Positions 39,306 to 64,000 of a DNA stretch of 64,000 nucleotides are shown piece after piece (positions within the stretch are counted from its first letter, which is position 1; the number at the start of each line of letters is the position of its first letter). The notes under the pieces are model-generated. The model was given only the letters and a program-made list of their open reading frames with translations, was not told the origin of the DNA and made no database searches. The stretch covers positions 299,944 through 363,943 of the IMG/VR virus record IMGVR_UViG_3300021963_000021. The stretch is one strand, 5' to 3'. The translations under genes were made by a program, and so were the position numbers.

Positions 39306-39592
39306 TGCTACAACTAAGATTTGAACTAAAGAATCCTTGGTCTAAAGATCGTTTTAAGAATCTAGGCTGTGTCAGCGGACGCATTTCCAAGAATAAAGCG
39401 TGGGAATTAGAACACACATTCTATGATGGTCTCATAGCAGACTGTGAGTTTAAGTTCACGACCAAAGAAGATCATGCTGGTCTAAACATTATGATAGGTG
39501 TTCTAGGCTACGCTGTTCATTTCAGCATCTACGATACTAGACACTGGGACTACGAAAACAACTGTTGGCAAGTTTATGAAGATTTGCGCTAG
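39305..39592 (+). CDS. hypothetical protein whose TAG stop lies inside the tRNA
   Basis: 95 aa; ends GATTTGCGC-TAG, with GCGCTAG as the tRNA acceptor 5' strand. Confidence 0.7.
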   Translation: MLQLRFELKNPWSKDRFKNLGCVSGRISKNKAWELEHTFYDGLIADCEFKFTTKEDHAGLNIMIGVLGYAVHFSIYDTRHWDYENNCWQVYEDLR

Positions 39593-39660
39593 AAGCCTAA
39601 TGGTCAGGCACGGGTCTCTAAAGCCCAGGATAGCAGGTTCGATTCCTGTCTAGCGCACCA
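39586..39660 (+). tRNA. amber suppressor tRNA (anticodon CUA)
   Basis: Acceptor GCGCTAG/CTAGCGC + ACCA; D-arm GCCT/AGGC; anticodon arm GGGT-CTCTAAA-GCCC (CTA at 39618-39620); T-arm GCAGG-TTCGATT-CCTGT. Confidence 0.85.
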
Positions 39661-48743: not shown

Positions 48744-48788
48744 ATATCACAGACACTGGGAACAAGATCTCCGAGTGGGGAGCGAACA

Positions 48789-48989
48789 ATGACCTATAGA
48801 GATTACATACGCACAGAGCTGTTAGAACGAGCAGCTAAAAGATACCCTAATAACACACGACTACAGATGCTGTATCAAATTGGATTCTTACAAGCACAGC
48901 TGGCTGAGGCAATTAGAGCTGACAACTATAATTACTATAGATTTAAACAAGCATTGGCTCGATCTGAACACTGGGAGCGGGAACTATGA
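48789..48989 (+). CDS. hypothetical protein
   Basis: RBS GGAGCGAA. Confidence 0.65.
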   Translation: MTYRDYIRTELLERAAKRYPNNTRLQMLYQIGFLQAQLAEAIRADNYNYYRFKQALARSEHWEREL

Positions 48990-50784: not shown

Positions 50785-50873
50785 TTGACGAGTTGGAGTG
50801 CCTAGGCATTGACCCTGGAGCCGTTAGGGTCTTTGTTTCTGTGCTATAATACGTTTTTTAACTAGGAGCGAGT

Positions 50874-51056
50874 ATGAAGATGGTTTTTGTAGTACAAGCA
50901 CAGGGATTCGGAGACGACGAAGCTGCCTTTGAGAACATTGCTGCTTTCACTCGTAGACCACTGGCCCAGCAGTATGTTGCTGATCTCCAGGAGCAGGATC
51001 TAGTGGACGACATGGAGCATGTGTACAGAGTAGAAGAAATAACCCTACAGGCCTAA
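50874..51056 (+). CDS. hypothetical early protein
   Basis: AGGAGCGA RBS. Confidence 0.65.
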   Translation: MKMVFVVQAQGFGDDEAAFENIAAFTRRPLAQQYVADLQEQDLVDDMEHVYRVEEITLQA

Positions 51057-51488: not shown

Positions 51489-51553
51489 CGAGTGGTTGAC
51501 AGGGCCTTCGGGCCCTGTTATAATATGGCTATATTAACACTAAGGAGCGAGCT

Positions 51554-51985
51554 ATGGGTACACGTTGTTTGACTTTTGTCTACGAGGGCGCGACGCCTGT
51601 GGTCAATCTCTATCGTCAGTACGATGGTTACCCTGAGGGTCACGGTCGCGAGCTGGCTCTGCTGCTGACCCGCGGTGAATTGATCAATGGGCTCACAGGT
51701 GAAGATCGCCCCGCATTCAACGGCATGGGCTGCTTGGCTGCGCAGGTCGTAGCACACTTCAAACAGAGTGTGGGTGGCTTCTATATCTACTCTGTAGAGC
51801 AGACTGACTGCGGTCAGGACTACGAGTATCACGTCTATGAGCAGGAGCAGCAGCTGATGGTCCGTGTGGTGAACCGTGGCTGCAACATGTTTGGGCTCAC
51901 TATGAGCGATACCAACACGGTGATCTTTGAGGGCACAGCACAAGAGTTCTATAGTTACTGTGAACCCAAAAAACAATCTGCATAG
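51554..51985 (+). CDS. conserved phage protein (MGTR...YRQYDGYP family)
   Basis: 143 aa; ends TAG. Confidence 0.75.
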   Translation: MGTRCLTFVYEGATPVVNLYRQYDGYPEGHGRELALLLTRGELINGLTGEDRPAFNGMGCLAAQVVAHFKQSVGGFYIYSVEQTDCGQDYEYHVYEQEQQLMVRVVNRGCNMFGLTMSDTNTVIFEGTAQEFYSYCEPKKQSA

Positions 51986-52047
51986 GGGTTGACAAACGGT
52001 CAGCGACGTGCTATAATACATTTTTTAACACACATAGGAGCGAACTT

Positions 52048-53118
52048 ATGCCAGCAATCATCGAACTTCGTAGCGGTACGTACCGTATCCGTGGGCAGGA
52101 AACGTCCATGGCGGGCTTCCGTTTCGAGCTCGTAGAAGGTTTCAAAGAGGGTGCCCAAGGGGGCTTTGTTACTGTTAACGGTGGTTCAGTACAGCCCGCA
52201 AACGCAGGTATCCCAGATCGAAGCATCCGTATCCGTTGCGCATCAGCTCAGGACTATGTTGTGGTCACGGGTACTGCTCCAGCAACTCCAGCAGGCGATA
52301 AGAGCCTAGAGCAGATCAAAGTCTCGGACGCTGTGGTAGCACATGAGACTGACGAAGAGATCATCGAACGACTGCGTGGCCGTTTCGAAGTACTCAAGGA
52401 CATGACCAAAGCTGTGAAAGAGGGTACAGTACGTGCCATGATCGTCACAGGCCCTCCAGGTGTGGGCAAATCCTTTGGCGTAGAAGAAGTACTCAGCAAG
52501 GATGATCTGTTCGATACCCTGGGCCAGCGCAAGCCCAAATACGAGATCGTCAAGGGCGCAATGTCAGCCGTGGGTTTGTACAGCAAGCTCTATCACTACA
52601 GCGAGAAAGGCAATGTTATCGTGTTCGATGACTGCGACTCTGTGCTGTTAGACGATCTGTCGCTGAACATCCTTAAGGCTGCTTTGGATAGCTCTAAGAA
52701 GCGTACCATCTCGTGGAACACGGACTCACGTGTACTGCGTTCAGAGGGTGTGCCGGACAAGTTCGAGTTCAAGGCGGGTGCCATCTTTATCACCAACATC
52801 AAGTTCGAGAATGTACGCTCTAAGAAGCTACAGGATCACTTGGCTGCTTTGGAATCACGTTGCCACTACATCGACCTCCAGATGGACACAGACCGTGAAA
52901 AGGTACTGCGCATCAAGCAGATCACCACAGACGGCATGTTGGACAGCTACGAGTTCGAAGACTGCGTCAAGGACGAGATCACAGACTACATCGTCGAGAA
53001 TCGTGCTAAGATGCGTGAGCTGAGCCTGCGTACTGTACTGAAAGTCGCTGACCTGCGCAAGAGCTTTCCTACAACTTGGAAGAGCATGGCTGAAGTAACT
53101 GTCATGAAGCGAGGTTAA
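52048..53118 (+). CDS. AAA+ ATPase
   Basis: GPPGVGKS, VFDDCD, LESRC. Confidence 0.9.
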   Translation: MPAIIELRSGTYRIRGQETSMAGFRFELVEGFKEGAQGGFVTVNGGSVQPANAGIPDRSIRIRCASAQDYVVVTGTAPATPAGDKSLEQIKVSDAVVAHETDEEIIERLRGRFEVLKDMTKAVKEGTVRAMIVTGPPGVGKSFGVEEVLSKDDLFDTLGQRKPKYEIVKGAMSAVGLYSKLYHYSEKGNVIVFDDCDSVLLDDLSLNILKAALDSSKKRTISWNTDSRVLRSEGVPDKFEFKAGAIFITNIKFENVRSKKLQDHLAALESRCHYIDLQMDTDREKVLRIKQITTDGMLDSYEFEDCVKDEITDYIVENRAKMRELSLRTVLKVADLRKSFPTTWKSMAEVTVMKRG

Positions 53119-53552: not shown

Positions 53553-53642
53553 CCTCAGGGTTGACTTTGTGATAGTAAGGTAGTAAACTGTATAAACGCT
53601 GAAGACATTCAGCCATTTAACTTAAATGAAAGGTACACACAC

Positions 53643-53918
53643 ATGAAGTATTTGTTCTCGAAGGACTCTAAGACGTTCAAGATCCAGTCAGCTCTTAAGG
53701 CTGGTGAAACTCTAACCCAAGCACAGGCTACTAAGCGTTTCGGCGTTAAGAACCTGTCAGCAGAAGTAAGCCGCATTCGTCAGAACGGCTATGCTGTCTA
53801 CAGCAACACTCGTGTCGCTGGCAATGGTGTTAAGGTTACTGAGTACGCTATCGGTACACCGTCACGTGAAATCGTTGCTCTTGGCTATGCAGCTAAGGCA
53901 ATGGGCATGACTGTTTAA
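53643..53918 (+). CDS. winged helix-turn-helix protein
   Basis: LKAGETLTQAQATKRFGVKNLSAEVSRIRQNGY. Confidence 0.7.
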   Translation: MKYLFSKDSKTFKIQSALKAGETLTQAQATKRFGVKNLSAEVSRIRQNGYAVYSNTRVAGNGVKVTEYAIGTPSREIVALGYAAKAMGMTV

Positions 53919-53946
53919 TCACAGTCTGTACTAGTTCAAACAACTG

Positions 53947-54003
53947 ATCCGATTCGCTCCCGGGGATGCTGTTTGGGGAAGGGCCTTTAGGGCCCTTTCT
54001 TTT
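53947..54003 (+). other. 3' hairpin with anti-RBS loop (TCGCTCC) followed by terminator
   Basis: TCCG-ATTCGCTCC-CGGG, then AAGGGCC-TTTAG-GGCCCTT-TCTTTT. Confidence 0.55.
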
Positions 54004-54117
54004 TGGCCCTGGTGGCACTCCGCTCAGTCACTGTGGCAAAAATACAACAGATATTTTGGTTGACAGCCCTGAGTAAATACCGTATAATAGAGGCATAGTT
54101 AAACAAAGGAGCGAACT

Positions 54118-54750
54118 ATGTTTACAGCTGATCAAGTTTGGGGTCTTGCCATAGCAGCAGATCGTATCAATGGGGGATACCTCAAAGAGCCCGTCTATGA
54201 CTTTGAAGTGGATCAGCGTAATCCTGTCAAAGAAGCCAACAAGGCCATCGTCAAGCGTTGGCTGCGTGAACAGGACTTCTCAGCAGCAACAGCTGAAGAT
54301 ATCGACCGTGGCCGTGTAGTTCGACACTACTTCAACGGCTTCCTACTCAAAGAACTCTCTGGAAAGATCAACGACTTCGAGCGCCAGGCTTTGAAGATCG
54401 CACAGAAGGACGAGTTCACGGGCCGCGATATGCTGGACTTCTCCATCGTCAGCTGCTTGCCCTCAGTGATGCTGCGTGATCAGGCTCGCAACGAGATCGC
54501 ACGTGAGATCCGCGTCAGTGAACAGCTGGCCGCCAAGGAAGGGGACGCTGTAGTCATGGACATCGAAGTGATCAGCAGCCGCTTCAACCCTGAGTATAAC
54601 AAGCATCGAGTCACTGCTCGCGCAGGGGAAAGCTTCGTGGACTTCTGGATCGGCACAGAGCTCAAGGGCACACACCGCATCAAGGCCAAGGTCAAACGGC
54701 ACCGTGGCGATAATACAACACAGCTTAACTATGTGAAAATCATCGGTTGA
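54118..54750 (+). CDS. hypothetical protein with possible C-terminal OB-fold
   Basis: Own promoter and RBS. Confidence 0.7.
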   Translation: MFTADQVWGLAIAADRINGGYLKEPVYDFEVDQRNPVKEANKAIVKRWLREQDFSAATAEDIDRGRVVRHYFNGFLLKELSGKINDFERQALKIAQKDEFTGRDMLDFSIVSCLPSVMLRDQARNEIAREIRVSEQLAAKEGDAVVMDIEVISSRFNPEYNKHRVTARAGESFVDFWIGTELKGTHRIKAKVKRHRGDNTTQLNYVKIIG

Positions 54751-54824
54751 CAGACCGATTAACTGAGCATATAATAGAAGCATAGTTAGAAACAACTGGG
54801 CACAAATTTTACTAGGAGGTCTCA

Positions 54825-55913
54825 ATGGCAAAAAGCACAGAAGCAAGCAACATCCGCACCGTAGGTCCTAAGGGTGCTATCAAGGCAATTAGCAAGGCTA
54901 TTGCCAAGCGTCGTCCACTCTTCCTCTGGGGTCCCCCCGGCATTGGTAAGAGTGATATCGTCAAGCAGATTGGCGATACAGCAGGCCGCGAAGTCATTGA
55001 CATTCGCTTGCCACTTTGGGAGCCCACTGACATCAAGGGTATCCCTTATTACAACTCAGACAGCAAGAGCATGGTGTGGGCACCTCCTAGTGAATTGCCT
55101 ATGGACCCAGATAGCAACGCTATCATCTTCTTGGACGAGCTTAACTCTGCTCCTCCGGCTGTCCAGGCTGCGGCCTATCAGTTAGTTCTGAATCGCCGTG
55201 TTGGCACCTATGTGCTTCCCAAGGGTGTAGATATTGTAGCGGCAGGTAACCGTGACGGTGACCGTGGTGTTACCTATCGTATGCCTAAGCCACTGGCTAA
55301 CCGCTTCCTACACTTGGAAATGAAACCTGACTTCGATGACTTCCAAGAGTGGGCTGTTATGAACAAAGTCCACGCAGAGGTTGTGGGTTACCTGGGCTTT
55401 GCCAAGCAGGACTTGTTCGACTTCGATCCTAAGTCTAGCTCACACGCATTCGCAACTCCTCGCTCTTGGAGTTTCGTTAGCGATCTGTTGGCAGACGACG
55501 ATGTCGACACTGACACGCTGACTAACTTGGTCGCAGGTGCTGTAGGTGACGGCCTCGCACACAAGTTCATGGCTCACCGTAAGGTTGCGGGCAAGATGCC
55601 TAAGGCCGCAGACATTGTCGACGGCAAAGAGAAAGAGCTTAAGATCAAGGAAGTGTCTGCGATGTATTCCTTGACCGTTAGCCTGTGCTATGAGCTCAAG
55701 GATCGTGCGGACAAGAAGGTCAAGGGTTGGGACTCTATGGCAGACAACTTCTTCCGCTACATGATGGATAACTTCCCAACAGAGTTGGTAGTGATGGGTG
55801 CCAAGGTTGCCCTTACCAACTACAACTTGCCCTTGGACGCTTCGAAGATGAAAAACTTCGACGAGTTCCATCAGCGTTTTGGCAAGTATGTTTTGAAAGC
55901 CATGGAGAACTGA
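54825..55913 (+). CDS. MoxR-like AAA+ ATPase
   Basis: WGPPGIGKS, FLDELN, AAGN, PLANRF. Confidence 0.9.
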   Translation: MAKSTEASNIRTVGPKGAIKAISKAIAKRRPLFLWGPPGIGKSDIVKQIGDTAGREVIDIRLPLWEPTDIKGIPYYNSDSKSMVWAPPSELPMDPDSNAIIFLDELNSAPPAVQAAAYQLVLNRRVGTYVLPKGVDIVAAGNRDGDRGVTYRMPKPLANRFLHLEMKPDFDDFQEWAVMNKVHAEVVGYLGFAKQDLFDFDPKSSSHAFATPRSWSFVSDLLADDDVDTDTLTNLVAGAVGDGLAHKFMAHRKVAGKMPKAADIVDGKEKELKIKEVSAMYSLTVSLCYELKDRADKKVKGWDSMADNFFRYMMDNFPTELVVMGAKVALTNYNLPLDASKMKNFDEFHQRFGKYVLKAMEN

Positions 55914-56026
55914 GACCTCGCTATGGCGTTCAGGGTGGAGTGCCAGCCCAGGTGCTCCGCCCACCTATTCGGTTGACAAGCAGGGCAGATGATAGTATAA
56001 TATATACATACTAAGGAGAGCGAACA

Positions 56027-57232
56027 ATGGATCCAATCGTAGAGAAACTAACAACTGCCCGTATCGGCCTTCTTCTCAAGCACCCTTTCTTTGGCAACAT
56101 GGCTACTCGTATGCGTCTTATCGACGCCAGCGACTGGTGCCCTACAGCGGCAACTAACGGCCGTGACTTTATGTATAACAAGGACTTCGTTACCAAGCTC
56201 AGCGAAAAGAAGCTGGAGTTCCTGTTCGCACATGAGATCTGCCATGGTATCTTTGATCACTTTGGTCGTGTTGGTAGCCGCGATCGGCAACTGTCTAACA
56301 TCGCACAAGACTACGCTGTGAACCAGATCCTTGTGGACGAGCGTATCGGCGACAAGATCACTGAAGTTAAGATCTGCTATGATCCAAAGTATCGTGGCAT
56401 GGCTTGGGAAGAGATCTACGATATCCTTTGGGAGAAGGCAGAGAAGATTCCTATGGATCAGCTCTTGGCTCAGTTGGGTGACCTGCTTGACGAGCATATC
56501 AAAGAGCAAGAGGGTGCGGGTGCCGGCGATGACAAGACCAAAGACGGCAAAGACAAGCCTACTATGAGCAAAGAAGAAGCTCAGAAGATCCGTGATGAGC
56601 TCAAAGAAGCCATGATCCAATCCGCACAGGCCGCAGGTGCTGGTAAGGTGCCCGCAGGTATCCAGCGTATGATCAAGGACTTGACTGAGCCTAAGATGAA
56701 CTGGCGTGAAGTGCTACAGATGAATATCCAAAGCATTATCCGCAACGACTACTCCTTCCAACGCCCTAACCGCAAGAGCCAGCACAGTGGTGCTATTCTT
56801 CCAGGTATGAAGAACGATCAGACTGTGGATGTGGCTATTGGCATTGATATGTCAGGCAGTATCGGGCAAGAGGATGCTACCGTCTTCTTGAGTGAGGTCA
56901 AGGGCATCATGGAGCAATACGAAGACTATGCTATCGATATCTGGTGCTTTGACACAGAGATCTACAACCACAAGCGTTTCACACACGACGACGGTGACGC
57001 TCTGTTGAGCTATGAGCCTCAGGGTGGTGGTGGCACAGACTTCGAAGTCAATTGGGAGTTCATGAAGGACATTGACTTGGTACCTAAGAAGTTCATTATG
57101 TTTACTGACGGTTACCCATGCGGTGGCTGGGGTGACGAGGACTACTGCGATACCCTGTTCATTGTCAAAGGCTCTAACAACGAAGCACCGTTTGGACAGA
57201 CTGTGATCTATGATGAAAAGGTTACTGCGTAA
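56027..57232 (+). CDS. metallopeptidase + vWA domain protein (DUF2201-like)
   Basis: HEICH (HExxH); DMSGS MIDAS, GGGTDF, FTDG. Confidence 0.88.
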   Translation: MDPIVEKLTTARIGLLLKHPFFGNMATRMRLIDASDWCPTAATNGRDFMYNKDFVTKLSEKKLEFLFAHEICHGIFDHFGRVGSRDRQLSNIAQDYAVNQILVDERIGDKITEVKICYDPKYRGMAWEEIYDILWEKAEKIPMDQLLAQLGDLLDEHIKEQEGAGAGDDKTKDGKDKPTMSKEEAQKIRDELKEAMIQSAQAAGAGKVPAGIQRMIKDLTEPKMNWREVLQMNIQSIIRNDYSFQRPNRKSQHSGAILPGMKNDQTVDVAIGIDMSGSIGQEDATVFLSEVKGIMEQYEDYAIDIWCFDTEIYNHKRFTHDDGDALLSYEPQGGGGTDFEVNWEFMKDIDLVPKKFIMFTDGYPCGGWGDEDYCDTLFIVKGSNNEAPFGQTVIYDEKVTA

Positions 57233-57824
57233 GTTCTGGGGGCGGAGTGCCCCTAAGGTAGACCTAGACGCTTTCAGCTCGAGTCAAGTAGGCAGCAAAC
57301 TATGGCTGACCGAACGGCTCGAGTCTGTGCTTGCGGATCAGGTACAGGCTCCCGTGGCTGGCTACAAGATCTGGATCTACGGTGGTTGGTACGGCATCAC
57401 TAATCTGATCATGCGGGTACGCGGAGTTATCCCGGTCGAGTATGTGCGCTGCATTGACCGGGATCCCGCATGTGAACCTATCGCTGATAAGATCAACAAG
57501 TTCTGGGAATGGCAGGACTGGCAGTTCAAGAGCATAACAGGTGACGTCAACGAAGTCAACTACAGCCAAGACAACCCCCATATCGTAATCAACAGCAGCG
57601 TAGAACATATGGGGCCAGGGAAGTGGTTTGATATGATTCCAAAGGGAACTATCGTGGTCTTACAGGGCAGCGATTTACCCCACCCTGATCACGTGCGACG
57701 CATACATAGCGTCGATGAATTACGGAGTGCCTGCCCGATGTCCAGCGAGTTCTACTCTGGATCAATGACCTTTAACTACCCTGGGCTAGAGCTAAAAAGG
57801 TTCATGATCATAGGGATCAAGTAA
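57210..57824 (+). CDS. class I SAM-dependent methyltransferase-like protein
   Basis: IYGGWYG, IDRD, INSSVEHM. Confidence 0.6.
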   Translation: MMKRLLRKFWGRSAPKVDLDAFSSSQVGSKLWLTERLESVLADQVQAPVAGYKIWIYGGWYGITNLIMRVRGVIPVEYVRCIDRDPACEPIADKINKFWEWQDWQFKSITGDVNEVNYSQDNPHIVINSSVEHMGPGKWFDMIPKGTIVVLQGSDLPHPDHVRRIHSVDELRSACPMSSEFYSGSMTFNYPGLELKRFMIIGIK

Positions 57825-57917
57825 ACGGCCCCGCTGCATATGTGTGCGTACAACCCGGTTGACAACAACATAAACTGAGCATATAATACATACATCATAA
57901 CAGCATAGGAGCGACAC

Positions 57918-58286
57918 ATGCGATACTACGATACACTGCTTGAGACCAAGCGCGGGCCCTACACTGTGATCGTGGACAAGACCTGGGAAGATCTACACCC
58001 TAGGGACTGCTTCGATGACACTGTCACAGACATCAACGAGATCTGTAAAGACATCGATCGTGGTCATCTTGAATGGTTTATGCTGCGCACTCGAGTGTTC
58101 TACGAAGGGGTAGAACTCAGCTGTGAATACCTCGGCGGCATGCTCTACGAAGATCCTTCGGAGTGCCTCACAGACGGATCAGCAGAAGATCAGATCTGGA
58201 TGGCCCTGGATTCAGCTAAGAAAACTGCGCTAGAATACAAACAAAAGTTCGCGGACCTTGATGTAAATATTGAGGAGACCGCATAA
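57918..58286 (+). CDS. hypothetical early protein
   Basis: Promoter + GGAGCGA RBS. Confidence 0.7.
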   Translation: MRYYDTLLETKRGPYTVIVDKTWEDLHPRDCFDDTVTDINEICKDIDRGHLEWFMLRTRVFYEGVELSCEYLGGMLYEDPSECLTDGSAEDQIWMALDSAKKTALEYKQKFADLDVNIEETA

Positions 58287-58660
58287 TGGAAACACTAACA
58301 ATCATGGCCCTAGTGGCTATAGCATTCTATCTAGGCTGGAGAGCCAATGAATTCATGACTAAGATCATGATTAGATCTTTGATGGACGACATGGGCATCA
58401 CTCCAGATCAACGGCAGCAACTGATCGAACGCTGCGCTGAAGAGATCAAAGAGATGAACAGCGAGGAAGACGATCTAGCAGAGATCAGCATCAAACTCGA
58501 GCAGCATCAGGGCGTGATCTTCGCCTACAGCGAGGATGACGGCATGTTCATGGGTCAAGGCAAGGACCGCGAAGAACTGTTCAAGAATCTAGGAGATCGC
58601 TTCAAGAATCTACGCTGCGTGGTCAAGGCCGAGAATGGGGCGGAGCTAATCCGTGGTTGA
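58286..58660 (+). CDS. hypothetical protein with N-terminal TM
   Basis: TAATG-coupled. Confidence 0.65.
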   Translation: METLTIMALVAIAFYLGWRANEFMTKIMIRSLMDDMGITPDQRQQLIERCAEEIKEMNSEEDDLAEISIKLEQHQGVIFAYSEDDGMFMGQGKDREELFKNLGDRFKNLRCVVKAENGAELIRG

Positions 58661-58691
58661 CAGATTGGAAAAATGGTTGTACAATACGATC

Positions 58692-58907
58692 ATGAATACA
58701 GACTTTTACCTAAAATGGACAGCTTGCGCAGCTACACTCGTAGGGGCGTTGTTTACTTCGCTGCGATGGGATCCGTTCAACATTTGGTTCCTCAACGTGG
58801 GTGCGCTGCTGTACTTGATCTGGTCGCTGAGGATCCGCGAATGGAATCTCGTGGCTATCAACGGAGGACTGTTAACCATATACTTCGTAGGGTTATTCCT
58901 TCGATAG
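58692..58907 (+). CDS. small membrane protein (PnuC-like fragment)
   Basis: KWTACAATLVGAL...WNLVAIN; ends TAG. Confidence 0.55.
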   Translation: MNTDFYLKWTACAATLVGALFTSLRWDPFNIWFLNVGALLYLIWSLRIREWNLVAINGGLLTIYFVGLFLR

Positions 58908-59239
58908 GTTGACAGATTGAGCAACTGGACGTATACTACACACACTAAACACACAGAAGGAGAGCGCAATGGGTTATGTAATCGCATTTGTTTTCGGTAT
59001 CATCGTGGCAACTGTGGGATTCACAGGCATCGCTAAGATCGGCGATCAGGCCGTGGACAAAGTTCAAACCATCACCAAGGAAGCCGCAAAATGAGCTATC
59101 CTGGTCAACTCTTCGAAGATCCCTTCTACGATGATGATGGTGTTCTCGTTGACGAGGACGCTGAGTTATCGCCCGAGGAACAGCTGGCCATCATTGAAGA
59201 TGTGCTTGCGGACTTTGATCCTTTCAGCACAGTCAACTC

Positions 59240-59473
59240 ATGATCGCAGAGTGGGTCTTGATCCTAGAACTCATGAGTCCCGGTGGGGATTTCATGGGCA
59301 AGATCGCACTGCCCTTCCACGATCAGAAGTCATGTAAGTTCGTACTAGATCAGGTTAAAAAACCTGTGGATACAGAGTATCCATTAGCGCCAAAAGCACG
59401 TGGAATCGTCTGCGTAACTAGGGATCATTGGACGGGCAAGAAGCTGATGCCCGGAGTTCCCTTAGACTACTAA
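59240..59473 (+). CDS. hypothetical protein
   Basis: 77 aa. Confidence 0.55.
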   Translation: MIAEWVLILELMSPGGDFMGKIALPFHDQKSCKFVLDQVKKPVDTEYPLAPKARGIVCVTRDHWTGKKLMPGVPLDY

Positions 59474-59560
59474 GTCACTGAATTCATTGACGAATCTTTC
59501 CGGTTGACAGGGTGGGCAACTGCTGCTATTATAGGCACAGTTAGCAAGAGGAGCACAGCA

Positions 59561-59698
59561 ATGCGCAAGTTCAAGTTCATTATGGATAACCAGGAAGTCT
59601 TCCACGTGGTCGCTCGTGACTTCCGGGCTGCATGCCTAGCTTGGGAACAGTTCGGCAAAGACCCTAGAGACATCTGGGCTATTGAACAAACTGGTTGA
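59561..59698 (+). CDS. small hypothetical protein
   Basis: RBS GAGGAG. Confidence 0.55.
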   Translation: MRKFKFIMDNQEVFHVVARDFRAACLAWEQFGKDPRDIWAIEQTG

Positions 59699-59746
59699 CA
59701 GTTTGGCTAACTGGTGCTATAATATACACATACTAAGGAGAGCGAC

Positions 59747-59965
59747 ATGGGTTATTTTAAAGATCTAGAAATCGAAGTAATGACCATGGCCCACGAGATG
59801 GGTGATGACTTTGGCGATGACGCTATGACTGTGATCACCATCGCTAGAATCCTTGAAATGTCACCAACGGATGTCCAGGATATCCTCGCCGCAGACTTCG
59901 ATGAAGATCCACGTGAGTTTGCCGAGAGAGCCGCAGACTTGGACGCGGAGTATTACGGTGCCTAA
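59747..59965 (+). CDS. acidic hypothetical protein
   Basis: Promoter + RBS. Confidence 0.65.
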   Translation: MGYFKDLEIEVMTMAHEMGDDFGDDAMTVITIARILEMSPTDVQDILAADFDEDPREFAERAADLDAEYYGA

Positions 59966-60188
59966 GTTCAAATACATCCTAGTCAGGGCCGCTGTGATCG
60001 ACGAATACTACGAGGTCGAAGCGGATTCCGAAGAAGAAGCCCTGAGCATGGCCTACGATGGCAACTTGGGAGATCCTGTAAAGACCGAATTCATCGATTG
60101 GCGTGATGATGAGTATCAGATCGCTGACACAGAGGAGATCGAGCCCTTGTATCAAATGGTTAAAGACTATGACACCACAAGAACTTGA
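59958..60188 (+). CDS. acidic hypothetical protein
   Basis: GTG start; YEVEADSEEEA. Confidence 0.55.
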   Translation: MPKFKYILVRAAVIDEYYEVEADSEEEALSMAYDGNLGDPVKTEFIDWRDDEYQIADTEEIEPLYQMVKDYDTTRT

Positions 60189-60357
60189 ATACATCCGTAA
60201 GGCCAACTTGGTCCTAGCTGACCCCGAGACTACACCCATGGCTGCTGCCAAGATCTGTAGAGTGATCAGTCAGATCTACAAGAAGCAGGCAGAGAACCTG
60301 GAGTTTGCTTTGGTTGACAAGGTGGAGAATCGGTTGTATAATACGATTACTGATTAA
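60169..60357 (+). CDS. hypothetical protein
   Basis: MTPQELEY start. Confidence 0.55.
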   Translation: MTPQELEYIRKANLVLADPETTPMAAAKICRVISQIYKKQAENLEFALVDKVENRLYNTITD

Positions 60358-60372
60358 CAAAAGGAGCGACTT

Positions 60373-60993
60373 ATGCCAAATTGGTGCAACAACAACTTGA
60401 CCCTACATCACGAAGATCCAGCAATGATCCAGCGAGCCTATGATGCTCTGGAACGCGGAGAGTTCTTACAGGAATTCATTCCAGTGCCAGAATCACTCAA
60501 GATCGTCGCGGGGTCCGTTGGTGATCCTGATGAACAACGCAAGTTAGAGGAAGCAACTGCTCGCAATGTAGAAGTCTACGGTTATGGCAACTGGTATGAC
60601 TACTGCGTGGGCGAATGGGGCACCAAGTGGGATGTAGGCGAGCAGGGTGCCAGCGATATCCATCCAGATGGCCGGCTCTTACACACCTCGTTCGACTCAG
60701 CATGGTCGCCACCGATCGAAGCCTATGTGAAGTTGAAAGAGATGGGCTTTACCGTGGGTGCGTTCTACTACGAACCCGGCATGTGCTACGCAGGCCACTG
60801 GGACGATGGCGATGATTGCTACTTCGATCTCTCTGAGATGAAGAGCCATGAGGTAGCACAGACATTGCCCAGTGATCTAGATGAGGCTTTTGCCATCTCA
60901 GAATCTATGGCTGAGTATGAGGCTGAGAACGAAGAAGAGCTCACACAGTGGATCCGTGAGGGAGTGGAGGCCAAGAATGGCACGGACTCTTAA
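60373..60993 (+). CDS. DUF1281/YubB ferredoxin-like protein
   Basis: MPNWCNN, WYDYC..WGTKWD, FDSAWSPP, YYEPGM. Confidence 0.82.
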   Translation: MPNWCNNNLTLHHEDPAMIQRAYDALERGEFLQEFIPVPESLKIVAGSVGDPDEQRKLEEATARNVEVYGYGNWYDYCVGEWGTKWDVGEQGASDIHPDGRLLHTSFDSAWSPPIEAYVKLKEMGFTVGAFYYEPGMCYAGHWDDGDDCYFDLSEMKSHEVAQTLPSDLDEAFAISESMAEYEAENEEELTQWIREGVEAKNGTDS

Positions 60994-61180
60994 GTATCTA
61001 CTGACCATAAAGACTGGAACAGACGGCCCGGGTGATCTCGCCCAGGTCGAGAACTTGATAGCCTTGGCTTTCAAGGATCTGCTCTACGATGACGAATTCG
61101 TGGAAGCTCTTGGGGAGACCCAGAGCATCTCGAGTCAGGTAACACCCATTTTGGACAATCAACCGCCACAAAGTGGTTGA
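60977..61180 (+). CDS. hypothetical protein
   Basis: RBS GGAGG. Confidence 0.55.
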   Translation: MARTLKYLLTIKTGTDGPGDLAQVENLIALAFKDLLYDDEFVEALGETQSISSQVTPILDNQPPQSG

Positions 61181-61265
61181 CAATTGGCTAGGATGATGTT
61201 ATAGTTAATATACTACCAATAGTGGTAGATGTACACAACACACACACTTTGAAAGGCAACTTAAA

Positions 61266-61568
61266 ATGGCAACTGAAAAAATGTTCTCCGTCGCTGGTGT
61301 TTCCACCCAAGCTGGGAAGACCAAGATCCGTTTCGCAAACGACACCATGCGCATCAAGATCCTGGCCAAGAATGGCCACACTGACATCGACCTCGTGGAG
61401 CTGCCCACAGCTATGACCAAGGGTGAGATCGCAGAGCATCTTAAGACCGTCGAATTCGGCAAGGGCAATCCAGCTGTAGAAGCTGCCATCGCTTACATTG
61501 CCAAGAAGAATCCCGTGGCAGTAGCCACGGTGAAGGCCACTGCTAAGACAGCGGCCGTTGCTGCCTAA
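61266..61568 (+). CDS. conserved phage hypothetical protein
   Basis: FSVAGVS...KIRFAND..RIKILAKNGH. Confidence 0.75.
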   Translation: MATEKMFSVAGVSTQAGKTKIRFANDTMRIKILAKNGHTDIDLVELPTAMTKGEIAEHLKTVEFGKGNPAVEAAIAYIAKKNPVAVATVKATAKTAAVAA

Positions 61569-61569
61569 A

Positions 61570-61636
61570 TATCCGACTCGCTCCCGGATAGCAGCAATCC
61601 TTTGCCCTGTTGTGTAAAAGCAACAGGGCTTTTTTT
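61570..61636 (+). other. 3' hairpin with anti-RBS loop (TCGCTCC) followed by terminator
   Basis: TATCCG-ACTCGCTCC-CGGATA, then GCCCTGTTG...CAACAGGGC-TTTTTTT. Confidence 0.6.
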
Positions 61637-61695
61637 TGGTTGACAACTGACTGTTTTGGCCGTACAATAGAGTCATAGTTAGATAAGGAGCGAAA

Positions 61696-61956
61696 ATGAT
61701 CATAGAACAAACAGAACAACAGCGTGTAGTCCAAGCCCTCAAGGGATGGCAATTTGTCAGAGGTACACACGGCTGCTTGTATGATCGTGGTTCAGCAGAC
61801 AGCTACTACGGCCGACCACGTAATCCGCACTATGGCGGTGTGGGTGGTGACAGTGGTCCGCGTGTTGACCAAGGCTTGAGCATAGACGAAATTAAAGAAT
61901 ACTACGCCGGCTATGAATACAACGAACGCTTCGGTGACAAGAAGGACTATCGGTAA
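61696..61956 (+). CDS. hypothetical early protein
   Basis: YDRGSADSYYGR motif. Confidence 0.7.
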   Translation: MIIEQTEQQRVVQALKGWQFVRGTHGCLYDRGSADSYYGRPRNPHYGGVGGDSGPRVDQGLSIDEIKEYYAGYEYNERFGDKKDYR

Positions 61957-62183
61957 TGGGCTGGGTAGTCTACGATGATCAGTACCGCTTGGTCAAGTAC
62001 CACAAACGGGCTTCCACGGCCCGGGCTGCTGTGACTCGATACCGGAACGAACTGGAGAAAGGATATCGAAGCTATCCTAGGATCCTGGGCTGCTGCTCAT
62101 ATCAAGACTTCGAAGGGATCCTGATGGGCTTACGCGGTGATCAGTTCAAGATGTGGCAGTTTTGTAACAGTCAAATTGGTTGA
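61956..62183 (+). CDS. hypothetical protein
   Basis: TAATG-coupled. Confidence 0.6.
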   Translation: MGWVVYDDQYRLVKYHKRASTARAAVTRYRNELEKGYRSYPRILGCCSYQDFEGILMGLRGDQFKMWQFCNSQIG

Positions 62184-62652
62184 CATTTTGGACAAAGCAC
62201 AGTATAATACACACATGAACAAAGCAAAACTTTACCTACTACTGGCCCTGATCTGCACACTACAAGTCCTGGCCATCTTCACACTAACCTAAGGAGCTGA
62301 CAATGACACTAGCAGAAGCCTGCGAAATCATCCGAATCAAAGCCTATGGCGCTGATCAACCCTTCCTGGAGCAGCTGATGGCCATCAAGGCCCGTCCAGA
62401 GGAATACAATCTTGAAACTCTCAAAGCCTACTACGTGGTCATGGATGCTGGCCAGAAGATGTTTGCGCCGGCATGATGCCCTACACTGTTGTTTACCCAA
62501 ATGGCCGTCAACAGCAGTTCTACATCAGATCAGTGGCTGACATGTACGCAGCAGTCAATGGGGGACGTGTTGTAGGGCCGCCACAGTTGAAATTGGTTGA
62601 CAAACGGGCTGCTTGATCATATAATACACACACTGAAACAAAGGAGCGAACC

Positions 62653-62862
62653 ATGAAGAACCCAATACAGAAAAACGGCTTTTTTGCCACTCCAGACTCA
62701 ATGCAGGCCCTGGAAGATCAGATCATGGCATTCACTGGTCAGGAACGTATGGTAGCAATGACCGCAGCACTGATGGCTCTGAATCTAGCCAGCAAAATGG
62801 TTGACGAAGCTATCCAAAACCAGTATAATACAAACACTGAAACACGCACACAAGGAGCCTAA
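62653..62862 (+). CDS. hypothetical early protein
   Basis: Promoter + AGGAGCGA RBS. Confidence 0.65.
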   Translation: MKNPIQKNGFFATPDSMQALEDQIMAFTGQERMVAMTAALMALNLASKMVDEAIQNQYNTNTETRTQGA

Positions 62863-62863
62863 C

Positions 62864-63049
62864 ATGTCAGAACGTTCAGCAATGTTTCTCTTGGTCACGG
62901 GCATACTGGTAACAGCATTCGGCGTAGGCGGCATTGAGTCTAGCTTGGATGATCAAGGACTGTTAGCTGGGGTAGCTGTCAGTGCCGTGGGCCTATTGAT
63001 CATGTGGTCGGGCACACTGGGTCTGCGCAACGCAGATCTTTATCGTTAA
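62864..63049 (+). CDS. small membrane protein
   Basis: Two TM helices. Confidence 0.6.
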   Translation: MSERSAMFLLVTGILVTAFGVGGIESSLDDQGLLAGVAVSAVGLLIMWSGTLGLRNADLYR

Positions 63050-63058
63050 GGAGCTGCT

Positions 63059-63346
63059 ATGAGACAACTGATCACAGCGATCATCCTCGCAACAGTAGCG
63101 GTAACAGCACAGGCGGCAGAACTTACCCCTACTCAGCAGCGTTGGTTGTATGTATATAACGAACAGATAGCCAAAGTTAAGTTTGCTATTCAAGTACAGA
63201 ACAATGATGCGATCTGTATGGGGATGAATGTAGCTAAAGAGGCGGCGCTGAACATAGGAGATAAATCCTTCTATGAGAGTCACATTAAGCTAATGAAGAA
63301 TCTACGTGATCGCGGGGCCCTATGCTACGGGTGGAGTTCGTTGTAA
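63059..63346 (+). CDS. exported hypothetical protein
   Basis: Signal peptide AQA. Confidence 0.6.
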   Translation: MRQLITAIILATVAVTAQAAELTPTQQRWLYVYNEQIAKVKFAIQVQNNDAICMGMNVAKEAALNIGDKSFYESHIKLMKNLRDRGALCYGWSSL

Positions 63347-63424
63347 AAATACAACAACAAATTGGTTGACAGGGTGCCTGTTTGAGCTTATAATATACGC
63401 ATACTAAGAAATTAGGAGCGAACT

Positions 63425-63739
63425 ATGAAGCTGGAGAACCGCAGGCACATCGTGTATGCTATCAACATAGCAGGTGCTCAGTACATAGGCTGTACCAATG
63501 TAGAGCCCCGTCTGGGAGTAGCTGGTAGCCTAGCACGACGCATAGCCAAGCACTGGTATAGACTCAAGGATGAGCGCAGAAGCAAGTGGGCACTGTATCA
63601 GGCATTGGCCACACTGCCCTGTAAGGAAGCAGTACCAGCAGAAGTCATAGTGGTAGCCGCTAGCAAAGCAGAGGGCCATGCTGAAGAGCAAAGGCTAATT
63701 AAGTTATTGGATCCCAAATTGAATTCAGACAAGGACTGA
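63425..63739 (+). CDS. GIY-YIG-like nuclease
   Basis: IVYAINIAGAQYIGCT...H...E...LN. Confidence 0.65.
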   Translation: MKLENRRHIVYAINIAGAQYIGCTNVEPRLGVAGSLARRIAKHWYRLKDERRSKWALYQALATLPCKEAVPAEVIVVAASKAEGHAEEQRLIKLLDPKLNSDKD

Positions 63740-63740
63740 T

Positions 63741-64000
63741 ATGAATGACAAAGACTACACCGAGTACGACAATCAAGAAGAAGCAGAGATAGCACAGATA
63801 GCTAACTTGAATGCCAACACTGCTGCTATCAACGCAGCACGTAGACAGCTAGCCAAGCAGGCCGAGCAGCCCAGCGCAGAAGAGTGCGAGGACTGCGGCG
63901 AGGACATCCCCAAGGCACGTCGAGAGATGATCTTAGGCGTACAACGCTGCGTCTCATGCCAGGACATATGGGAACGACGCCGAAGGATGTACGGCACTGG
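63741..64000 (+). CDS. TraR/DksA C4 zinc-finger protein (runs off window end; not in ORF track)
   Basis: MNDKDYTEYDNQEEAEIAQ...CEDCGEDIPKARREMILGVQRCVSCQ. Confidence 0.88.
   Translation, partial: MNDKDYTEYDNQEEAEIAQIANLNANTAAINAARRQLAKQAEQPSAEECEDCGEDIPKARREMILGVQRCVSCQDIWERRRRMYGT

Follow-up and report, generated by a model that had tools for sequence, protein, structure and literature searches.

Two small RNA hairpins located at the 3′ ends of early genes of an uncultured 364-kb jumbo phage belong to a conserved, previously undescribed RNA motif, whose exposed loop is the exact complement of the ribosome-binding site (RBS) used by many of the early genes of the same phage. This suggests, without proving it, an RNA-based brake on early protein synthesis. 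We analyzed a 64,000-nucleotide stretch (hereafter, the window) corresponding to positions 299,944 to 363,943 of IMG/VR record IMGVR_UViG_3300021963_000021. A first-pass annotation, made from the sequence alone, had reported that the same element follows two ORFs of the window, each time just before an intrinsic terminator, and that its loop is perfectly complementary to GGAGCGA, the RBS of many early genes. What it described in the sequence proved to be correct. The first element, TCCGATTCGCTCCCGG, lies at 53948-53963, 30 nt after the TAA ending at 53918, and the second, TATCCG-ACTCGCTCC-CGGATA, lies at 61570-61590, 1 nt after the TAA ending at 61568. They precede intrinsic terminators at 53976-54000 plus a U-run and at 61604-61629 plus T8, respectively. 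RNA folding showed that both elements form a hairpin with a 9-nt open loop followed by the terminator (z = −2.7 and −4.2). The relevant features, all on the + strand, are as follows.

53643-53918 (+), carrier gene 1, encoding a 91-aa winged helix-turn-helix protein (PF14090 HTH_39, E = 8e-7; phrog_4973), RBS GAAAGG
53937-53975 (+), motif hairpin 1, with outer stem CAAACA/UGUUUG (53937-42 / 53970-75), inner stem UCCG/CGGG (53948-51 / 53961-64) and loop AUUCGCUCC (53952-53960)
53976-54004 (+), intrinsic terminator 1, with an 11-bp GC-rich stem, loop UUA and a U-run
61266-61568 (+), carrier gene 2, encoding a 100-aa orphan protein without Pfam or PHROG hit, RBS GAAAGG
61570-61590 (+), motif hairpin 2, with stem UAUCCG/CGGAUA and loop ACUCGCUCC (61576-61584)
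61604-61637 (+), intrinsic terminator 2, with a 10-bp stem plus T8
50865-50873 (+), RBS GGAGCGAGU of ORF 50874-51056, a perfect 9-nt complement of loop 2 (predicted duplex −16.6 kcal/mol with loop 2)
51544-51550 (+), RBS GGAGCGA of ORF 51554-51985
52037-52044 (+), RBS GGAGCGAA of the NrdC.10-like ATPase gene (52048-53118), a gene family that carries the motif in a sister clade
54108-54115 (+), RBS GGAGCGAA of ORF 54118-54750 (predicted duplex −13.1 kcal/mol)
57908-57914 (+), RBS GGAGCGA of ORF 57918-58286
60363-60369 (+), RBS GGAGCGA of ORF 60373-60993
61687-61694 (+), RBS GGAGCGAA of ORF 61696-61956
62643-62650 (+), RBS GGAGCGAA of ORF 62653-62862
63415-63422 (+), RBS GGAGCGAA of ORF 63425-63739
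48779-48786 (+), GGAGCGAA before the ATG at 48789 (66-aa ORF), a less certain target

To determine whether these matches exceeded chance, we counted TCGCTCC/GGAGCGA in the window and found 14 occurrences against 4.2 expected, a number reached in 0 of 100 shuffles. Nine of the minus-orientation copies (GGAGCGA on the + strand) were located 9-11 nt before the ATG of the ORFs at 50874, 51554, 52048, 54118, 57918, 60373, 61696, 62653 and 63425, and a tenth was located at 48779. The 16-mer with up to 3 mismatches occurred twice against 0.22 expected. In the whole 363,943-bp genome only these two hairpins were found; a third look-alike at genome position 282488 turned out to be a minus-strand RBS followed by an ATG, and degenerate extra copies were at background level. 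The two carrier proteins are unrelated and their flanks do not align, showing that the shared motif is not a duplication remnant. A covariance-model scan of 46-64 kb against Rfam 15 at E ≤ 1 returned only two tRNAs, and thus no known RNA family matched the motif.

Next, we examined whether the element was conserved in relatives, since its absence there had been named beforehand as grounds for rejecting it. There were no near matches among GenBank phages, and PA5oct, the best ATPase hit at 48%, lacks the motif. By contrast, related IMG/VR jumbo-phage contigs carry the invariant loop (A/G)UUCGCUCC downstream of three unrelated gene families, namely 87 of 112 carrier-1 homologs, 25 of 65 carrier-2 homologs (homologs of carrier 2 were found in 64 IMG/VR loci) and about 45 loci of the NrdC.10-like ATPase. 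In carrier-1 homologs the outer and inner stems are conserved with compensatory changes, while in carrier-2 homologs the motif is conserved directly after the stop codon. Across 115 unselected sites the loop was invariant and the stem covaried, with 57 double-change cells against 16.4 ± 3.3 in shuffles (0 of 500 shuffles reached this value) and a covariation score of 0.416 against at most 0.193 for slid controls. The motif was always on the sense strand, and 93 of 129 sites had a T-run within 90 nt. Some relatives have 2-3 copies in one UTR, and in the sister clade the motif can form the apex of the terminator. The 7-mer is also conserved unstructured right after stop codons, so an exposed sequence is what is selected. 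These conclusions rest on the loci fetched by protein homology; the raw count of more than 120 exact 16-mer hits in IMG/VR is not evidence in itself, because part of it is expected by chance and about 30 sites have no upstream ORF or an unrelated context.

We then compared RBS usage with the presence of the motif. GGAGCGA made up 441 of 1274 GGAG-type RBSs (35%) in motif-bearing loci against 9 of 234 (3.8%) in others, and in the present genome it accounted for 15 of 35 in the early region against 6 of 120 elsewhere. This co-occurrence may reflect a single evolutionary event, so that it is confounded by phylogeny. In a de novo word search, the most enriched word before start codons (AGGAGCG, 23-fold) and the most enriched words after stop codons (CGCUCCC/GCUCCCG, about 7-fold) were reverse complements. 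Predicted duplexes between the loops and TIRs such as that of the 54118 or 62653 gene (AAGGAGCGAAC) ranged from −12.3 to −16.6 kcal/mol, against −6.5 to −8.5 for the same TIRs with the 16S tail; as inferred from the anti-Shine-Dalgarno (anti-SD) sequence, CGAA cannot pair with the canonical 16S tail. Thirteen of 29 TIRs reached −10 kcal/mol or lower, against a mean of 0.9 for shuffled loops. When we looked for covariation between the −1 base of the loop and the +8 base of the RBS, neither varied, which left this comparison without power.

The first-pass annotation had inferred that the elements are 3′-UTR-derived anti-SD sRNAs that shut off a whole class of early mRNAs, or decoys for a regulator, and that both carrier genes would escape because they use GAAAGG. 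Our results support this inference only in part. The complementarity is exact, clade-wide and far above chance, the hairpin-plus-terminator 3′ end is the architecture of 3′-UTR-derived regulatory RNAs, and in this genome the two GAAAGG carriers have the weakest predicted pairing of the 29 TIRs. However, escape of the carriers is not general, because the ATPase carrier uses the GGAGCGA RBS in 32 of 44 motif-bearing cases. Moreover, a distant relative (G002) keeps two motif copies, although its early RBS is AACAAGGAG plus a variable spacer, with GGAGCGA at background level, and a search for an alternative partner of the motif in G002 found none. Considering that there are two motif loci against about 14 target mRNAs driven by consensus σ70 promoters, simple stoichiometric shut-off is doubtful. 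The failure of searches of the phage genome to find a chaperone or an RNase III also counts against the inference. No stable 50-70-nt RNA was seen in the metatranscriptome contigs, which are assemblies rather than reads and come from libraries in which small RNAs would be lost. The contigs over carrier 1 were 5-8 times deeper than neighbouring contigs, so that its RNA is abundant, and showed a drop in depth across the hairpin; the only hint of such a small RNA is that these contigs ended at 53942 or 53928, just 5′ of the hairpin.

Our preferred but tentative interpretation, held with less than even confidence, is that the elements are copies of a structured RNA motif found in a clade of uncultured freshwater and marine jumbo phages distantly related to PA5oct and T4. 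The motif is a short stem of variable sequence that presents the invariant loop, placed in the 3′ UTR of a few early genes either between the stop codon and the intrinsic terminator or as the apical loop of the terminator. The loop is an 8-9-nt complement of AAGGAGCGAA(C), the extended Shine-Dalgarno (SD) tag that marks a large share of early genes in the same phages. In this view, the 3′ UTR, either as part of the mRNA or as a stable 3′ fragment left after mRNA decay, would base-pair through the loop with the RBSs of tagged early mRNAs, in trans, and in cis for the ATPase mRNAs that carry both elements. It would thereby compete with 16S rRNA for the SD, damp or time early translation, and possibly alter mRNA stability. 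The analysis itself establishes the motif, its structure, conservation and position, its complementarity to the RBS and the co-occurrence of the two, whereas pairing in vivo, the existence of a processed RNA, and any change in target expression and its direction are inferred.

Other explanations must be weighed against this one. The main rival, which we regard as possible but somewhat less likely, is that the hairpin is an operator or decoy for a sequence-specific RNA-binding protein of the phage or host, which would control the 3′-end stability, processing or translation of the carrier mRNAs; multi-copy 3′ UTRs in the sister clade would then act like CsrB/RsmZ-type sponges, and the RBS complementarity would be secondary or coincidental. 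An invariant 9-nt loop on a variable stem is the classic form of a protein operator, some UTRs carry 2-3 hairpins with identical loops, and the motif persists in G002 without the RBS class. In addition, a flanking (U)AAGUCC word recurs next to the motif, which pairing with the RBS does not explain, and terminator loops of sRNAs can act in regulation, apparently without base-pairing (PMC11979758). On the other hand, no candidate protein was found: searches of the phage genome revealed no CsrA, Hfq or ProQ homolog, and no match to RegA (PF01818) or RegB (PF10715), for which the control genomes were also silent. The predicted model of carrier 2 had no fold match, which gave no support to a role as an RNA-binding regulator. 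The protein model also leaves unexplained why the strongly enriched RBS extension is the exact complement of the loop, a chance match over the CGA(A) extension being estimated at roughly 1/64 to 1/256, and the motif also occurs unstructured.

The remaining possibilities are less likely. The hairpin could be a nut-like or termination-control element that recruits a factor to RNA polymerase and sets read-through into the next early transcription unit. The order gene, hairpin, terminator resembles cro-nutR-tR1 of lambda, the motif is tightly associated with terminators, and CGCUC of the loop is shared with the boxA sequence CGCUCUUA. However, a lambda-type nut site has the boxA consensus CGCUCUUUA next to a boxB hairpin with a GNRA-like loop, and here only the 5 nt CGCUC are shared and the 9-nt loop has another sequence. 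Furthermore, every early gene has its own consensus promoter, so that read-through seems dispensable, linear copies abut stop codons far from any terminator, and the complementarity is not explained; we therefore consider this model improbable. Very unlikely is an action in cis on read-through transcripts, in which the loop would mask the RBS of the next gene unless that gene is transcribed from its own promoter. Both hairpins of the window are followed by genes with the exact RBS AAGGAGCGAA, and the downstream gene has GGAGCGA more often than baseline (11 of 55 against 20 of 243, p = 0.015), but only 20% of motif-bearing UTRs are followed by such a gene and many relatives have other RBSs downstream, which largely refutes masking as a general mechanism. 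Equally unlikely is a double-stranded DNA site, GGAGCGAA/TTCGCTCC, read in either orientation by a DNA-binding protein such as the winged helix-turn-helix carrier 1. The same duplex word does occur at early leaders and at 3′ ends, but the motif orientation is strictly tied to the transcribed strand, the flanking stem covaries, which a duplex site does not require, and G002 lacks the leader sites.

Post-transcriptional control in lytic phages is known almost entirely from protein factors of a few model phages, and a 2025 review of phage-derived sRNAs lists nothing comparable (PMC12197685). If our reading is right, this is a phage-encoded anti-SD RNA aimed at the phage's own early gene class, and it would show how an extended SD can serve as a regulon address. 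A bolder version, which the data allow and which we regard as possible but less likely than not, is that a clade of jumbo phages defines its early regulon by the 8-nt tag GGAGCGAA and reads it with the UUCGCUCC loop carried in the 3′ UTRs and terminator loops of abundant early transcripts. This would be an RNA-only counterpart of T4 RegB/RegA that times or damps early translation, the regulon having expanded from one or a few targets in distant relatives to a third of early genes in this lineage. Even if the function is different, the hairpin is a new, covariation-supported RNA family that is widespread in uncultured freshwater and marine jumbo phages and sits in an unusual place, in 3′ UTRs and terminator apices. 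Since the promoters and terminators are of the standard σ70 and intrinsic types, the hypothesis is testable without culturing the phage.

The motif can be compared with several known systems. CsrB/RsmZ protein-sponge RNAs are arrays of hairpins with identical loop motifs, as in some relatives, but the loop here is UUCGCUCC and lacks GGA, no CsrA was found in the genome, and this genome has single copies. In hok mRNA, fold-back inhibition involves 5′-3′ pairing within one mRNA, and in the sister clade a single ATPase mRNA carries both the GGAGCGA RBS and complementary 3′-UTR loops, which would allow pairing in cis, although without a toxin context and over 8 nt with a loop instead of an extended duplex. 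In T4, an early-gene-specific extended SD is the handle for inactivating early mRNAs by RegB and RegA, strong RegB sites being GG*AGRAYARAA in early TIRs (PMC3014915); there the reader is a protein nuclease or repressor, while the candidate reader here is an RNA loop. The 3′-UTR-derived base-pairing sRNAs of enterobacteria (CpxQ, DapZ, SroC type) lie at the 3′ end of an mRNA, share its intrinsic terminator and U-tail, and have a conserved exposed seed upstream of the terminator hairpin. The motif described here likewise lies at the 3′ end of a protein-coding transcript, shares its terminator and has an invariant, accessible UCGCUCC in a loop or unstructured context. It differs in being encoded by a lytic jumbo phage, in having the phage's own early genes as a class as proposed targets and an anti-SD in a hairpin loop as its seed, and in that a processed species and Hfq dependence are not part of the present evidence. 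Finally, the C-rich-loop sRNAs that pair with SD sequences (S. aureus RNAIII and RsaE, Bacillus RoxS) and the OxyS-fhlA kissing complex display short C-rich motifs in hairpin loops, sometimes in several copies, that are complementary to SD regions, as is the loop UUCGCUCC to GGAGCGAA at 9-10 TIRs in the window. By comparison, the present motif is UCGCUCC rather than UCCC, is embedded in mRNA 3′ UTRs and terminator loops, and reads a 3-4-nt extension beyond the SD core, which would give class specificity.

The region under study is the last 64 kb of a single 363,943-bp contig, an IMG/VR virus record rated 100% complete, which is found in marine and freshwater metagenomes and metatranscriptomes. 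From about 48 kb to the end of the window, and on into the first 1.5 kb of the contig, the + strand carries a dense array of about 25 near-consensus σ70 promoters of the form GG-TTGACA-N17-TATAAT, almost one per small gene, each followed by a short G-poor leader, an RBS and a small gene. Twenty-one promoter-like sites scored 11-12 of 12 in 18 kb and, in all, 41 sites were found against 18.5 expected. The GC content rises to about 50% in this region. The first 2 kb or so of the contig (genome 1-2052) is an 89-95% identical direct repeat of its last 2 kb (window 62000-64000), with rearranged blocks, which could represent diverged terminal redundancy, paralogous early genes or a strain-mixed assembly. 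ARAGORN called a tRNA with anticodon CUA (labelled tRNA-Pyl) at 39586-39660 (+), an amber-suppressor-type tRNA in a jumbo phage that could point to stop-codon recoding of some genes. Based on an NrdC.10-like ATPase, the closest cultured relative is the Pseudomonas jumbo phage PA5oct, at 48% identity; more distant T4-like phages also match.

The first-pass annotation had reported two 3′-UTR hairpins whose loops are complementary to the RBS of many early genes, and this observation was confirmed, with both elements at the positions assigned to them:
53948-53964, site 1, UCCG-AUUCGCUCC-CGGG, inside a longer helix (CAAACA at 53937-42 with UGUUUG at 53970-75)
53976-54000, terminator, directly following site 1
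61570-61590, site 2, UAUCCG-ACUCGCUCC-CGGAUA, starting one base after the stop codon
61604-61629 plus U8, terminator, following site 2
RNAs that end at the U-tracts were predicted to fold as two hairpins with the 9-nt loop open (z = -2.7 and -4.2). The 7-mer UCGCUCC and its complement occur 14 times in the window against 4.2 expected, and nine to ten copies of GGAGCGA sit 9-11 nt before start codons. The proteins encoded by the genes that carry the elements are unrelated, one being a 91-aa wHTH protein (PF14090; carrier 1) and the other a 100-aa orphan (carrier 2), and the two intergenic regions do not align outside the motif and the generic promoter. The two carrier genes share leader features that the GGAGCGA class lacks (53590-53642 and 61206-61265), namely a small hairpin, AACTTAAA, GAAAGG and a CACACAC run, and carrier-1 homologs keep AAAGGAAAC(TTAAA); these genes may form a separate expression class. 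The genome has no further copies of the motif. A look-alike at genome position 282488 is a minus-strand RBS; this RBS, GGAGCGAAAU, is itself displayed in the loop of a 4-bp hairpin (ACCG/CGGU; genome 282485-282506, minus strand, outside the window) directly before an ATG, which would allow loop-loop contact with the motif or may be a coincidence.

To determine whether the motif is conserved, we fetched homologs of both carrier genes from IMG/VR by protein similarity. UCGCUCC lay within 130 nt of the stop codon in 87 of 112 carrier-1 homologs and 25 of 65 carrier-2 homologs, at protein identities down to about 55-65%. The loop (A/G)UUCGCUCC was invariant, whereas the stem changed (CCG/CGG, UCG/CGA, CUG/CAG, GUG/CAC, AGG/CCU, UGG/CCA and GCG/CGC). 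On 115 unselected sites, the three inner pairs showed 57 compensatory double changes against 16.4 +/- 3.3 in shuffles (0 of 500 reached it), and the covariation score was 0.416, against at most 0.193 when the partners were slid. A third and more frequent carrier, a P-loop ATPase of about 290 aa homologous to window gene 52048-53118, appeared among loci fetched by the motif itself. In that sister clade the ATPase stop codon is followed by a structured 3′ UTR of 100-200 nt with 2-3 copies, of which one abuts the stop (UGA-UUCGCUCC), one is an internal hairpin whose 6-bp outer stem covaries extensively, and one forms the apical loop of the intrinsic terminator. More distant relatives carry an unstructured copy 3-4 nt after the stop codon. 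What is constant is therefore an exposed UCGCUCC on the sense strand in 3′ UTRs, usually next to a terminator; of 129 sites, 93 have a T-run within 90 nt. No matching family was found in Rfam 15.

Other conserved elements were observed. GGCACTCC lies just after the site-1 terminator (54014-54021), and the same word (CCGGCACTCC) recurs at this position, before the next promoter, in many carrier-1 relatives, although it is not enriched genome-wide here (9 against 5.5 expected). Recurrent hairpins of the type (C)UGUUGUAAAAAUACAACA(G) lie just upstream of early promoters (54033-54052, also about 62150 and 63340, and many related loci); they look like terminators but have a conserved stem and loop sequence across relatives. 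In distant carrier-2 homologs (loci L150-L184), a different conserved hairpin, GAGGCAGUGCCAAUAAGUCCUC-like, follows about 5-45 nt after the stop codon and shares the AAGUCC word seen next to the UCGCUCC motif.

We next examined the complementarity between the loop and the RBS. Among GGAG-type RBSs, the three bases after GGAG were CGA in 15 of 35 cases in the early region of this genome, against 6 of 120 elsewhere. In loci that carry the loop motif the figure was 441 of 1274, the next most common triplet having 53, whereas in loci without the motif it was 9 of 234. A de novo word count on loci fetched by protein homology gave AGGAGCG as the most enriched 7-mer before start codons (23-fold) and GCUCCCG and CGCUCCC as the most enriched after stop codons (about 7-fold); these are reverse complements over GGAGCG. 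In large related contigs, GGAGCGAA occurred 11-23 times against 0-4 for the control, and the copies clustered in one region, with 2-4 in the opposite (motif) orientation. The leaders differ outside the RBS, indicating that the CGA(A) extension is itself under selection, and this extension cannot pair with the canonical 16S tail, as inferred from the known anti-SD sequence. Predicted loop-TIR duplexes were -12.3 to -16.6 kcal/mol, against -6.5 to -8.5 for the same TIRs with a canonical 16S tail, and 13 of 29 TIRs reached -10 or lower, against a mean of 0.9 for shuffled loops. The two carriers had the weakest values (-1.0 and -3.1). The rare C variant of loop 2 is a perfect 9-nt complement of GGAGCGAGU at 50865.

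Transcription of the region was analyzed using assembled metatranscriptome contigs. In two runs the contig over carrier gene 1 was 5-8 times deeper than its neighbours (387 against about 50, and 26 against 2-5). Those contigs end at 53942 (followed by adapter sequence) and at 53928, just 5′ of the hairpin, and depth across 53955-54151 falls to 12 and 0, whereas a third run has a contig that reads through. This pattern fits an abundant carrier mRNA and possibly a 3′ end or cleavage site ahead of the hairpin, but contigs cannot establish either, and a 60-nt RNA would be lost from such libraries. The site-2 region was uninformative. In three runs, contigs join 59961 to 60167 with TTGAT in between, which looks like a strain variant that lacks 205 bp (59962-60166).

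The interpretation put forward in the first-pass annotation, that the hairpins give rise to anti-SD sRNAs that shut off a class of early mRNAs while the carriers, with a different RBS, escape, or else are decoys for a regulator, was only partly supported. The ATPase uses the GGAGCGA RBS whether it carries the motif (32 of 44) or not (41 of 48), indicating that carriers do not generally escape and that in that clade one mRNA holds both partners. A distant complete relative, G002 (354,680 bp), keeps two tandem motif copies after its carrier-1 homolog, but its early cassette is GUUUUUAACAAGGAG plus a variable spacer and GGAGCGA is at background; only GGAGC is shared, and there is one GGAGCGAAU RBS two genes downstream. 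The motif is therefore older than, or independent of, the expanded RBS class, and its co-occurrence with GGAGCGA across motif-bearing loci may reflect a single evolutionary event. In addition, two loci would face about 14 targets that are driven by consensus promoters. A test for covariation between the variable loop base and the RBS had no power, and masking of the RBS of the next gene on read-through transcripts is not general (11 of 55).

Considering these results together, we tentatively rank an anti-SD RNA first, although with less than even confidence. It would act in trans, and in cis for ATPase-type mRNAs, from the 3′ UTR or from a stable 3′ fragment. This is the only model that explains why the selected RBS extension is the exact complement of the selected loop, and it also fits the exposed-seed plus terminator architecture. 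The main rival, which we consider somewhat less likely still, is a protein-binding hairpin. It explains the invariant loop, the multi-hairpin UTRs, the recurrent flanking AAGUCC word and the G002 case, but not the complementarity, and our searches found no candidate protein. We consider nut-like termination control, a cis mask and a double-stranded DNA site unlikely. The conserved motif, its covarying stem and its complementarity to the RBS are established by sequence analysis, whereas pairing, a stable 3′ fragment and any regulatory effect are inferred.

We regard the element as a new RNA family with a so far only inferred function; a 2025 review of phage-derived sRNAs describes nothing comparable (PMC12197685). 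In architecture it resembles 3′-UTR-derived sRNAs, and terminator loops of sRNAs have recently been shown to matter in regulation (PMC11979758). In seed logic it resembles the C-rich-loop sRNAs that pair with SD sequences, and the OxyS-fhlA kissing complex. In its proposed biological role it parallels T4 RegB and RegA: in T4, strong RegB sites are an extended early-gene SD, GG*AGRAYARAA (PMC3014915), whereas here the candidate reader is an RNA.
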